This document shows, piece after piece, positions 4,300 through 64,000 of a DNA stretch of 64,000 nucleotides (the first letter of the stretch is position 1; every line of letters begins with the position of its first letter). Under the pieces are notes generated by a model. That model had not been told where the DNA came from and did not search any database. It saw only the letters and a list, made by a program, of their open reading frames with translations. Origin of the DNA: Amoeboaphelidium protococcarum X5 (Eukaryota > Fungi > Aphelidiomycota). A program made the translations under genes and the position numbers. The DNA lies in the NCBI GenBank assembly GCA_023515725.1, contig JALDTO010000192.1, positions 635,437-699,436 of the forward strand, in the 5' to 3' direction.

Positions 4300-5018
4300 T
4301 CACCAGACAAAGAGATAGATATACTATTAATATTACAATTTTACACACAGGGGTATTTGACTATTATGCACACTATGTACAAATTAATTATCCTATTGCC
4401 GTATATAATGGAATAGATCAGACTCTGGGAAGTGCCAATTATTACAAAGGAATCAGATATACAGCGCAACTATTATAAGAGAAAGTGTGTGTGTGTGTGA
4501 TACTTTGTATTACTAACCTATAAACTATCACAACAATTGAAGGATGAGATAATGACGAGTTAATTAACAATTAGGATTGAGAAGAGGAATTTTCACAAAT
4601 CTTTTTTTTACCAATTTTCTCGTCGATAAAAGCCCAGCTCTGCGACTCCTTTAAAATGAAATTTTTCTCGCACCAAGTTTTGTGTTACTTAATCGCCTGC
4701 TCCTGATTCGAACAAAGCTTCTAAATTAGTTTAATCTCTAGTCGCTGATTGATCATTGCTGTGTACAAATGTTCCAAGGCCAAGGATTCAATATATAAAT
4801 TTCTTGAGTCTGATACATTAAATCTTAAGACCAAATACGCGATTTTCTGTATTTAAGGCGTCTGTGTTAATTATCGAACGTTTTTTACAATGCGGTCACC
4901 TTGATGATGTGCTTGGTCTAATGTCTTTCTTCTTATCATCCTCTTTTCTTCTTTGATTCGTCTAATTGGTATTGTTAATCTAATTTAATTTCTAAAAATT
5001 TAACATTCTAAATTTAAA

Positions 5019-60019: not shown

Positions 60020-61981
60020 TCAGGCAAATTCACCTCCAACTTGAACTTTTTACATTTCAGCCTAATTGGGAGTGACTTTAATGTCTTGATATGGACCAGA
60101 TTAGGATAGATTGACGATATTGCTAGATTTCAACAGCAGCAACTCTAGAAAAAACTTGCATACATCAGATCTCTTGGCATTGGAGGATATTTGGGATAAG
60201 CAGATTCCTTCAGCATTCTAAGCGGATTGGAACTTTGATTACAACAATTTGATGGTCTTTATAGAGTTTCCGCTTAGCGAGGACTGCTTTTTCATGGATG
60301 ATTCCAACATGTTGCCTTCCATTGCCGCTCTCACCGGGGTACCATTAACACTATTTCCACCCAGGAGATTTTCTTGATCCTCGGCATCAACCGCAGCAGA
60401 CAGCATAGATTAAAATGGAGTTTTATCAACAGCCGGCGAGTAGATTGATATTTCAGCAAGTGGGTAATTGTTATCATTATCTGGTAACTGTTGATTGTAA
60501 CTCGACATCGTCGGTTCGTAGATATTGTCATTGAAAGACTCAATAGCCATTTGATCGGGCAGATTATCTGATTCTTGGCCTTTTACAGAAGGTGCACGAT
60601 GGTTATCCACGACTGGGTCAGCATTCAATTCATCAGGTTACAGCAGAGGAAGACGCGACTAAGGAGGATCAAAATATTTCTAATCAAATAAGATCTTCTC
60701 ATCCTGCTGAGATTTCAAAGCTACATAAGATTTGCCGACTGAAACAGGAGTCAAATTGATAGCCCAGTGACCCTTTTTGCAAATATTAGAAGTATCTTTC
60801 AACTGACGAGCAATTTCGGAATTAGACAACTCAAGTACACTGTCTAGAGCTATGGTTTTATTCTTGCGGCGAGCCTACTACTTTGCAGCAACGGTCTTCT
60901 TCAGCTTTTTGGAAGATGCAGGCTTTGTTTGGCTTTCCAACAAATTCTCATTGCCAATCACTTAGCCAGCGAGCTGATCACTGTCAACGTTATTAAAGGA
61001 ACGCCCTTGCATGGAAGGAGTAGGAGGAAGGGACATTGATATCTCTTTCAACAGAGGATTTTCTTCAATAGTGTCCAAATTCATAGATATTTGGGCATCA
61101 GCATGCACCATAGGAGCAAAATTACTCATACTACCTATAGAAAACTTGCGAACAGACTCCATATCAATTACACTTCCAAGGCCGCCACCGAGACCAAAGC
61201 TGAGTCGAGACATTGACTGGTCAGCCAGAAAATCACCAGTTCTTGATTAATCTCTTCTAACAGTCTCCACTTCGTTGAACGATTCATTTCCCAGAGGACC
61301 ACCAAAATTGGAAATTGATACGGCAGATCTCTGGACAGTGGATAAAGGACCAGTCATCTGATTAAATTCTGGAATCAAATCAGTCCCAAAATTCAAGTTT
61401 GAGAATAAATTACCAGAAAGACTAAAGTCATAATTCTCTCTCAGCGTGATATCATCCAGGCGCGCAGTTTTGTTGGTGGATGGAGCCTTGAATGGAGCAT
61501 TTGACTGACGACGAGGAGTGGATATAGAAAGCATACTAGAGTTGGCATCAACCGTAAATTGACCAAAATCAATGCCTTCATCTTCAGGCCTGTTCATGAA
61601 TTAATTTCTTCTGACTCCAAAATGAATTACAGGATCCGTTTCAGCATGAAGTGTAATGGCATTTCTGGGAGCCATTGCCTACTCGTCAGGCAGTTCAACA
61701 TTAGAAGGTTTGAAAACCATTTTAATCTTGACCAAAGCTTCATTACAGTCTTCCAGCAGGTATCGAGTCTTTCTAGAGTATATGCGGACCACACCCAGCA
61801 GCAACTGCCCAGACAGTCTCAGTGCAATGATGGACGCGTCTCCTTCCAAAATGTCATCCACAGAATCCTTGATATTGGTCTGGTATATCTGAGCCTTTGA
61901 CAACTTCTTATCCAGGTGAGCAGCCAGCCAAACCTTTGCCAGAGCACCCTTTTTAGCCAAAATTTAATCGTTATAGAACAT
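60020..61981 (-). CDS. RAD21: Cohesin kleisin Rad21/Mcd1
   Basis: MFYNDQILAKKGALAKVWLAAH, ALRLSGQLLLGVVRIYSRKTRYLLEDC, C-terminal FFLELLLLK...QSGPYQDI; ExxR candidate separase site EVETVR. Confidence 0.93.
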
Positions 61982-62623
61982 TAAGAATGTTGTTAAGATG
62001 ATAACGCAAGGTAGGAAGACGGAAAGTGAAGGATAGAGAGAGACGAAAGGAACAAGGTGAAACGAAGAATCAAGTATGTGAAACGAGGTTTCATCGTATT
62101 GACGAATCAGTCTCAAATGAACACAGTAAACAGAATGCTAGACAGAGTAAAGGTTCTCTTTGTTTTTGATATCTAAAAAAACTATTGTGGTCTCTTATTA
62201 TTAGTGCTACCCTGATTCATTGTAAGGTTCGACTCTGCGTTTAGATGTGTTTAGCATGAAATCCGACGGACGCGATTTGGTAACCGGAGATTGTTCCAAA
62301 ACGGGTGATTAAAGGTGGGATTGACTGCAAGATGAATCCGTGATCCCACAATTTATCGGAGAAATAGCCACATACAGTTTGACGCGTGGCTATAAAGATT
62401 TAGAATTGTTATTTTTGCTTCGTGACGCGTTTTAGCTGTATCTGATCTGGGTAATCTGGAGATAACAACCGTGAATAAAATCCGGATTAGGAGAGAGATT
62501 AAAATCAATCGGAACAAACTTGTTTTGCTGTTGATTAGAACACATGCAGGGTACTAGATTCTGTATCAAGCTCATATTTCTCCCAGAAATAGCTTCAAAA
62601 AGTATGATAAAATAAAAATTGCG

Positions 62624-62628
62624 AAAAA
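62624..62628 (-). terminator. Pol III oligo-T terminator of tRNA-Glu
   Basis: TTTTT on the minus strand, 3 nt after the discriminator base. Confidence 0.7.
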
Positions 62629-62631
62629 TTA

Positions 62632-62703
62632 CTCCCAATCGGAGAATCGAACTCCGGCCACTTCGGTGAGAGCGAAGGATCCTAACCACTGGACCAATTG
62701 GGT
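62632..62703 (-). tRNA. tRNA-Glu (anticodon CTC)
   Basis: 72-nt cloverleaf ACCCAAT TG GTCC AGTGGTTA GGAT C CTTCG CTCTCAC CGAAG TGGC CGGAG TTCGATT CTCCG ATTGGGA G; the 1:72 pair is an A-A mismatch. Confidence 0.92.
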
Positions 62704-62716
62704 TAAGTAATACTGC

Positions 62717-63535
62717 TGTTATCTTTAGATCGGGACTACTTGATATACTAGACAGGGAAAACTTAGACTGACTATACAGGATCTAACCAGACAAGCAAGG
62801 TAAAAACGTGTAAATAAGTTGAATACTATACTAACACGATGATCAAAAGAGATGGATCTCATCTATCGTGAGAACTTGATTGTATAATCTTGAGGAGGCG
62901 TGGGAACGTTGCTCAGCCACAATAGGCAAAGATCATTGATCAGTCTGCACGACTGTAACATTATGATACTCTAGGACAGACTATAAACACAATAGGAACA
63001 AACGGGAAGCTATATACAAAGATTAAGAGTCAAACAGAGACACCAACAGAAGTACAGGAAGATAAAATATGTTAATAAGATAAATACTCTATACACACGT
63101 TAAGTGGAAGAAATCAATGTTCATAAGTGGCGCGCAAATATACTGCAGATACTTGCCTATTCGAGACGTCAATGATGAGAGAGGCGCGCACTTGAAACAA
63201 TGTTGATCATCTAAGCCCCACAGAGTCAGTTGTTGATACTTGATCGACGCGTGTGCTAACAGTTATTCTGCAGCAAGTAATAACTATATGTTGCCACAAT
63301 CGGAAGACCACCAGACAAAGTTCGAGAGACCAGACACAAGAGGAATAAGTATATTGTGCAAATAAGTAAAAACTATATTAACACGATGATCATAAAAAGA
63401 AGGATGTACTCAGACATCCGCATATATAACTCAAGGCGTGGGAAACATCGGCAGCGACATGAGGCGTGGGAAGATCAGTACGCCACTCAGCACCGAGATG
63501 TGGTATCAGCCTCATGATCAGGTGTTACGTTAACA
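62717..63535 (-). repeat. 3' LTR (819 bp) of a Ty3/Gypsy-type element
   Basis: Begins TGTTA directly after the polypurine tract GGAGAGGGAGGTAG (63549-63536, minus) and ends TAACA at 62717, giving TGTTA...TAACA inverted termini. The second LTR lies outside the window. Confidence 0.75.
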
Positions 63536-64000
63536 CTACCTCCCTCTCCATGTTGGACATCTTGCCTTAAGTCCTAGAGGCAGTACCATCATAAAAAAAG
63601 ATTTGTTTTACTACACCGACGTGAGCCAAGGTGCAAGATCAGACTCATTCACCACCGAATCTAGGCGCAATCCAGCGGGAGTCATTAGCCAATATGTACC
63701 AGGAAAACCGACGTCAACGACAGCATATGGACCCTTCCAATTGAATTCAAACTTATTCTTGCCGTGATGTTTCAGCTTAACCCAATCACCAACCTTAAAA
63801 TAATACTCCTTGGCAGAAGGATCTAAATTGTACTTTTTTCTCATTAACTCAGCTTATACCTAAGATCGCTCAAACGCAGCACGTCTAGCATTACCCATGT
63901 CTTCAAAAACACGAGCTTCCAATTCACCATGTAATTGCGCTTCTTCCAATTCATCCAAAGGTTTCATAAGGGAAGATGGCGGGTGAGTGTCACTAGGAAT
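63518..64000 (-). CDS. Retrotransposon Pol, integrase C-terminal part (truncated by window)
   Basis: Frame open from 64000 through in-frame TAG 63862-63860 and TAA 63856-63854; first TGA at 63520-63518. Confidence 0.8.

Follow-up and report, generated by a model that had tools for sequence, protein, structure and literature searches.

Stacked LTR insertions upstream of a tRNA-Glu gene

[quoted passage not shown] This target gene, tRNA-Glu(CTC), occupies positions 62632-62703 on the minus strand, is the sole ARAGORN tRNA call within the window and is also recovered by Rfam over the same bases (RF00005, 53.1 bits; L031:69-140). Throughout, L031 denotes the sequence of the window locus running past the window end, and L032-L039, L101, L105 and similar names denote other loci. 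By direct reading, a 13-base spacer (62704-62716) separates the 5′ end of the tRNA from the first LTR base; it holds ACTG at 62712-62715, followed by an extra C at 62716, and this ACTG is likely the target duplication of a family C element described below. The initial annotation had placed an LTR terminus at 62717, 13 bases upstream of the tRNA gene and in the same orientation. A terminus of the TG..CA type was indeed read there, the outer boundary at 62717 stands, and both the gene and the element lie on the minus strand.

The same annotation treated 62717-63535 as one LTR, which did not survive the comparison with the rest of the genome. BLAST against the window's own genome returned no other full-length copy of this 819-base interval; the partial matches formed three sets, often paired 4.9-5.2 kb apart, and a single LTR was ruled out in favour of three units, each with its own independent copies and full-length elements elsewhere. 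Nine LTR pairs taken from the BLAST matches defined three element families. Family A has an LTR of 237 bases with the sense ends TGTTACAG and CTAACA, family B an LTR of 298 bases (299 in the B2 subfamily) with the sense ends TGTTAGCA and GTATCA, and family C an LTR of 266 bases with the sense ends TGTTAACG and ATCAACA. The LTR terminus of the B2 subfamily is AAAA instead of CA.

All three families are represented in the window on the minus strand, nested into one another. Set directly against the LTR end of the intact family C element L034, positions 62717-62722 (plus strand TGTTA) appear to be the outer end of a family C 3′ LTR, whose outermost five bases (62717-62721) stand beside the tRNA gene, separated from the rest of the LTR by two nested insertions. 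These few bases overlap the proximal copies of the family B duplication GTTA (62718-62721) and of the family A duplication TTAT (62719-62722). They are followed by a solo family A LTR of about 238 bases (62723-62960), with 98.7-99.2% identity to the LTR pairs of the full elements in L033 and L037, and by the second TTAT copy (62961-62964). A solo family B LTR of 298 bases, running in sense from TGTTAGCA to GAGTATCA, occupies 62964-63261 with 98-99% identity to the LTRs of L032, L035 and L036, and the second GTTA copy lies at 63262-63265. The main part of the family C 3′ LTR (63262-63535; 93% identity to both L034 LTRs) belongs to the integrase-carrying element and opens with TGTTAACG straight after the polypurine tract (63536-63549, sense GGAGAGGGAGGTAG, direct reading). 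A and B are read as solo LTRs because only C runs on into the polypurine tract and the integrase; B, and then A, would have inserted 4-5 bases inside the end of the LTR of C.

For TTAT, GTTA and ACTG alike, one copy of the duplication can be read on each flank of the insert concerned. For the family C element, ACTG is present at 62712-62715 and again at L031:5489-5492, directly after what remains of the 5′ LTR. The initial annotation predicted that ACTGC would flank the element on both sides and that the 5′ LTR beyond the window would match; the far flank reads ACTGT, agreeing in four of the five bases and differing in the fifth, and the first 43 bases of the 5′ LTR persist (L031:5446-5488), whereas the remainder, together with the primer site and the leader, has been deleted. 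Two bases past this stub lies an inverted LTR of a fourth type, D (L031:5491-5711; 224 bases, beginning with TGTTTCTG), and beyond it B-like debris at 75% identity. The identity to active copies drops with distance from the tRNA gene, from 99% (A) through 98-99% (B), 93-95% (C) and 88% (D) to 75% in the debris, and from this gradient D would have arrived first at tRNA-Glu, followed by C, B and finally A. Measured from the mature 5′ end of the tRNA, the target duplications of the window all lie in the range from −7 to −19, and the window records at least four successive insertions at one Pol III site.

The D-type LTRs were seen only as solo copies, always adjoining LTRs of the A, B or C type in stacks upstream of tRNA genes (also at L034:590-813 and on C162, C200, C233 and C264), and no full-length D element was seen among the loci examined. 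A diverged homeolog of the window locus is present on C212, where 113293-114063 and 115250-115468 correspond to window positions 61900-62710 and L031:6362-6583 with 80-87% identity; it is without the ~5 kb found between the same flanks at the window locus, as known from coordinates only. Many tRNA loci occur as such diverged pairs sharing both flanks, which suggests that two diverged copies of the genome are present in the assembly.

The integrase-carrying family C copy extends to the end of the window. The 3′ end of its pol gene (63550-64000, minus strand) would encode an integrase C-terminal domain with a GPY/F module, followed by a short tail that was compared with L034; the last stop-free piece (63614-63853) matches Pfam MLVIN_C, the SH3-like, GPY/F-bearing integrase C-terminal domain, at E 2e-7. 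As the initial annotation had noted, the integrase ends with this module and lacks a chromodomain. The frame ends about 45 codons later, inside the LTR. The coding sequence continues on the minus strand up to the window end, with TAA and TAG as sense codons. A run of 80 N, which is masked sequence or an assembly gap, directly follows base 64000 (L031:1438-1517), where the intact L034 has 19 bases, and it produces an apparent frameshift and leaves the integrase core unreadable across the run; past it, the element continues at 95% identity to the intact L034 on C207. A further frameshift lies in an A-run within the last ~25 codons of the pol tail. With its 5′ LTR and leader deleted and its tail frameshifted, the window copy of family C is dead.

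Genome-wide association with Pol III genes

The distribution of the families was examined from the LTR side and from the tRNA side. About 220 kb of the 23.6-Mb genome were read, so that the census is a sample, and an all-against-all comparison of tRNA flanks was confounded by the duplicated homeologous loci, for which reason an LTR library search was used instead. From the LTR side, 22 clusters were reached by LTR similarity, and in 19 of them the LTR edge nearest to a Pol III gene lies upstream of it, at 2-43 bases from its mature 5′ end. These genes comprise 17 tRNA genes of more than 10 isoacceptor types (Arg, Pro, Gly, Asp, Lys, Glu, Thr, Met, Gln, Ala, Ile and a suppressor reading UAA) and two 5S rRNA genes. 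No LTR cluster lies downstream of a Pol III gene among the sampled loci, and across 22 Pol III-adjacent sites the orientation is evenly divided, 11 in the same direction as the gene and 11 opposite.

From the tRNA side, the 63 best Rfam tRNA matches were chosen regardless of LTRs, the upstream side being available for 61 of them and the downstream side for 44. Of the 61 genes, 13 have an LTR of family A or B that ends 13-43 bases upstream, and no such LTR occurs in the 560 bases downstream of any of the 44 (Fisher p = 6e-4). On the generous random expectation that a 50-base window catches an LTR edge with probability 4e-4, the binomial p is ~4e-32. The initial annotation had proposed a Pol III- or tRNA-targeted retrotransposon family from the single insertion in the window, and had named copies distributed at random relative to tRNA genes as the outcome that would speak against it; the counts from both sides bear the proposal out. 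The targeting is more similar to that of Ty3 and Tj1 than had been proposed, because 5S genes are hit at the first bases to be transcribed. In L032 the end of the LTR is two bases before base 1 of the 5S gene and the duplication TCAT covers the first transcribed bases, and in L027 the gap is three bases.

The distances to tRNA genes group by tRNA type, with 28-34 bases for Lys(CTT), ~35 for Ala(AGC) and 11-14 for Pro, Gly, Met and Arg, which is the pattern that gene-specific start sites would give. A motif of the TTCATCCAAA type adjoins several insertion points, which hints that it marks a start site. The spacers between LTR and gene at tRNA-Pro, -Gly and -Gln share TTCATCCAA(A) in the tRNA sense (L035:1018-1030, L036:954-967, L039:6505-6525), and the target duplication sits on the TTCA of this motif, which may represent a conserved Pol III start-site context.

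Element anatomy, genetic code and age

Families A, B and C are sister families of elements of about 5.1-5.5 kb. Pfam scans of their stop-free pieces gave the order Retrotrans_gag, zf-CCHC, aspartic protease, RVT_1, RT_RNaseH, rve and MLVIN_C, and the pol order of protease, reverse transcriptase, RNase H and integrase was found in L031, L034, L035 and L037. On these sequence grounds, the families are assigned to the Ty3/gypsy (Metaviridae) LTR retrotransposons. Families A, B and C all carry the polypurine tract GGAGAGGGAGGTAG in front of the 3′ LTR, and so does L105, a metagenome relative described below.

In a search for open reading frames (ORFs) under the standard or bacterial code all elements seemed dead, a reading that was rejected when treating TAA and TAG as sense restored the gag and pol ORFs. 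With UAR read as sense, each full element has a gag ORF (207-417 codons) and a pol ORF (1223-1332 codons) that share one frame and are parted by a single TGA. This TGA lies at L032:2183-2185, L034:1997-1999, L037:1909-1911 and L031:4661-4663, and is followed by C in all families (TGA CTA in B2). Since TGA is the only stop codon in the genome, the arrangement suggests that the in-frame TGA between gag and pol is read through as a programme. Genes for tRNAs with the anticodons UUA and CUA, which read UAA and UAG, were found at L007:1821-1895 on C200 and at L026:845-918 (L039:456-529) on C158, and a family B LTR lies 16 bases upstream of the UUA-anticodon gene. A UAR-to-Gln code has been reported for Amoeboaphelidium protococcarum (PMC5304391), and the elements, judged by their restored frames, use this code as well, in keeping with the aphelid label of the initial annotation.

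Eight full elements were examined, and they have paired LTRs with TG..CA ends (apart from the B2 terminus noted above), a polypurine tract and short target duplications. Seven of the eight have LTR pairs with zero differences, and seven of the eight have perfect 4-base target duplications. The full elements are genuine integrations of recent date and not what prolonged selection has left behind.

Self-priming signature and integrase tail

No primer-binding site of the TGG type was found in the elements examined. Instead, in L032-L039 the ten bases at positions 2-11 past the 5′ LTR can pair with a word of the LTR itself, at position 121 in family A, 149 in family C and 161 in family B. In families A and C TTAACACGAT pairs with ATCGTGTTAA; in family B TTAACACGTT pairs with AACGTGTTAA, a compensatory change relative to A and C; and in L105 a wholly different pair is used, TTTACACTTC with GAAGTGTAAA (L105:63-72 and 4986-4995). 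TATATA is found 41 bases upstream of the LTR-internal word in family C and in B2. This layout corresponds to a predicted self-priming signature of the Tf1/Tj1 kind.

The Pfam scan of the stop-free pieces gave no chromo match. After the GPY/F domain, the frame ends within about 45 residues, and part of this tail is encoded by the LTR. About 10 residues past the integrase C-terminal domain (window 63550-63613), the tail contains the motif N-x-x-[FY]-F-[YSN]-D-G-[TS], which is kept in families A, B and C (tails of L034, L035, L037 and L038), in the metagenome relatives and in proteins of Batrachochytrium salamandrivorans (P0001-P0019), although the proteins of these relatives are only 46-73% identical overall. 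The motif overlaps a T-run upstream of the polypurine tract, and it may also be conserved for a cis-acting role in the RNA.

Relatives in a metagenome and a chytrid

A word search with a 186-residue piece of the integrase returned 98 matches. JGI metagenome proteins rank closest (up to 73% identity), and dozens of B. salamandrivorans proteins come next. Nine loci of relatives were examined, one JGI contig and eight from B. salamandrivorans, and two of the nine place the element beside a tRNA gene. The JGI contig (L105) contains a full element that shares both the polypurine tract and the TGTTAA start, and its 3′ LTR ends 11 bases upstream of tRNA-Val(TAC). In B. salamandrivorans L101, the 5′ LTR of an LTR pair (TGTTAAAAC...) starts 8 bases upstream of a putative tRNA-Val(AAC) (L101:1537-1612). 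The latter was called by ARAGORN, and an acceptor stem of 7 pairs and both the A box and the B box can be made out by eye; Rfam did not report it on L101, even at E up to 1. In two further chytrid loci (L100 and L102) a second, outer pair of direct repeats adjoins the inner LTRs, as in nested or stacked insertions, with no Pol III gene detected there. The one chytrid locus and the one metagenome contig together suggest that Pol III targeting extends to the relatives.

Comparison with known Pol III-targeted elements

Tj1 of Schizosaccharomyces japonicus, a Ty3/gypsy element related to Tf1 and Tf2 (PMC4600332), is the closest described element in design, because it combines the self-priming layout with a gag-stop-pol arrangement. 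Both have a size of ~5 kb and LTRs of ~240-300 bases, a gag ending in a stop with pol following in frame and lacking its own start codon, a primer-binding site complementary to an LTR-internal word, and insertions that hit 5S genes or fall within ~12 bases of tRNA genes on the upstream side; for Tj1, the reported insertions lie 1-10 bases upstream, plus 5S (PMC4600332). Tj1 differs in its one fixed orientation, against 11:11 here, in its 5-base duplications, against 4-base duplications, and in its ascomycete host, whereas the present host is aphelid-like and uses a UAR = Gln code.

Ty3 of Saccharomyces cerevisiae (PMC5911963) shares the gypsy domain order, the use of 5S start sites and of what are here probable tRNA start sites in both orientations and the stacks of solo LTRs, and inserts 1-4 bases from the Pol III start (PMC5911963). 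It differs in its +1 frameshift and tRNA-iMet primer, where the aphelid elements have an in-frame TGA and a self-priming signature, and in the 66-residue vestigial chromodomain after its integrase C-terminal domain, where the aphelid elements have only a tail of ~45 residues without a domain. Ty3 integrase is placed by TFIIIB, partly via this vestigial chromodomain (residues 446-511), which contacts Brf1 (bioRxiv 10.1101/2021.07.27.453949); the short tail of the aphelid elements leaves no room for a domain of this type. The three features of Ty3 proper, namely the vestigial chromodomain, the +1 frameshift and the tRNA-iMet primer, are thus absent from the elements described here. When compared with the Protein Data Bank (PDB) by sequence search, which is not a phylogeny, the RNase H matched Ty3 best and the integrase core matched foamy-virus integrase best, with a weak similarity to the Ty3 integrase core (E 3e-5).

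DGLT-A of Dictyostelium discoideum (PMC5006619, PMC5911963) is likewise a gypsy-type element of a compact genome and inserts 13-33 bases upstream of mature tRNAs in either orientation, a range overlapping that measured here. It differs in having a single gag-pol ORF, no intact copies in D. discoideum and an amoebozoan host, and no 5S targeting is listed for it in a review table (PMC5911963). The Tf1/sushi-type elements share the self-priming feature, whereas their chromodomain at the integrase C-terminus has no counterpart here.

Targeting mechanism and alternative explanations

Taken as a whole, the window very probably contains a hot spot, at the start of a Pol III gene, to which retrotransposons direct their integration. 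The positional specificity, the anatomy of the elements and the youth of the families are direct observations. In the proposed mechanism, families A, B, C and D would insert a few bases from the transcription start of tRNA and 5S rRNA genes, in either orientation and with 4-base target duplications, and each newcomer would land between the tRNA and the earlier insert or in the last bases of that insert. The precedents of Ty3 and Tj1 make it likely that the integrase is held at the Pol III initiation complex, with TFIIIB as the most likely partner. Contact would probably be made by the C-terminal domain of the integrase or by the conserved short tail after it, a placement made because no chromodomain is present.

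Several observations weigh against this interpretation. Three of the 22 clusters (on C13, on C207 and at 290 kb of C264) are without a detectable Pol III gene in the sequence examined, and no tRNA or 5S gene was detected at seven of the eight B. salamandrivorans loci, which are nested repeat regions. Some of the tRNA loci are duplicated homeologs, so that the sampled loci are not fully independent. The tRNA distances are measured to mature 5′ ends (8-35 bases), and insertion at the start site is seen directly only for 5S. In the window itself, the tRNA-side terminal dinucleotide of the family A LTR is AG in sense, not CA, and the family C duplication requires a one-base indel, namely the extra C between ACTG and the LTR.

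A tether other than TFIIIB could also direct the elements to Pol III genes, through a Pol III subunit, TFIIIC or the nucleosome-free DNA at active tRNA genes. Ty1 integrase, for example, binds AC40, a Pol III subunit. The elements lack the vestigial chromodomain by which Ty3 touches Brf1, their integrase core is nearer to foamy-virus integrase than to Ty3 integrase in the PDB search (E 2e-17 vs 3e-5, a sequence search and not a phylogeny), and the short conserved tail could serve as a peptide tether of the Ty1, Ty5 or MLV kind. Nevertheless, insertions a few bases from the first base of 5S and 8-14 bases from many tRNA 5′ ends reproduce the Ty3/Tj1 pattern and are unlike the broad ~1-kb window of Ty1 (PMC5911963), and tethering by a component other than TFIIIB is considered possible, though on the unlikely side. 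A more specific and quite doubtful suggestion is that a chromodomain-less, self-priming gypsy lineage, spanning aphelids, their uncultured relatives and B. salamandrivorans, targets Pol III starts via the tail peptide.

The positional bias could in principle also arise after integration. Survival in safe harbours is generally expected in compact genomes (PMC5006619), and random or weakly biased integration followed by purifying selection in a gene-dense genome would spare the harmless copies beside tRNA genes. This is very improbable here: copies with identical LTR pairs are too young for selective sorting and already lie at 2-35 bases, the sampled loci include none downstream of tRNA genes or elsewhere between genes, the window site has four insertions within 13 bases, and the insertions at 5S genes reach across the first transcribed base. 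Modules of tRNA plus LTR might instead have been spread by segmental duplication or gene conversion, given that many tRNA loci are diverged duplicate pairs sharing both flanks and that the window locus has its 80-87% homeolog on C212. Such a by-product can hardly be credited, as the flanking tRNAs belong to more than 10 isoacceptor types in addition to 5S, the spacers and duplications vary by site, both orientations are present, and the C212 homeolog is without ~5 kb of the window locus.

Novelty and significance

Most documented cases of LTR elements targeted to Pol III genes come from ascomycete yeasts and dictyostelids. Our literature search found no paper linking Amoeboaphelidium to retrotransposons and no description of an LTR retrotransposon upstream of tRNA genes in chytrids. 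It is well supported that the elements described here are a new example of the known strategy of inserting at Pol III start sites, not a new mechanism; several young families do likewise in a deep fungal-relative lineage with a reassigned genetic code. For annotation, translation with code 6 is required to see the ORFs of the elements, the stacked LTRs account for the repeat clutter upstream of tRNA genes in the assembly, and the insertion points mark probable Pol III start sites. These families provide comparative material for asking which part of an integrase reads the Pol III complex without a chromodomain, and whether start-site targeting is inherited or convergent. If the tail peptide is indeed the tether, it would differ from the Ty3 chromodomain, and Pol III targeting in the fungal stem lineage would be either ancient or independent of the yeast elements.

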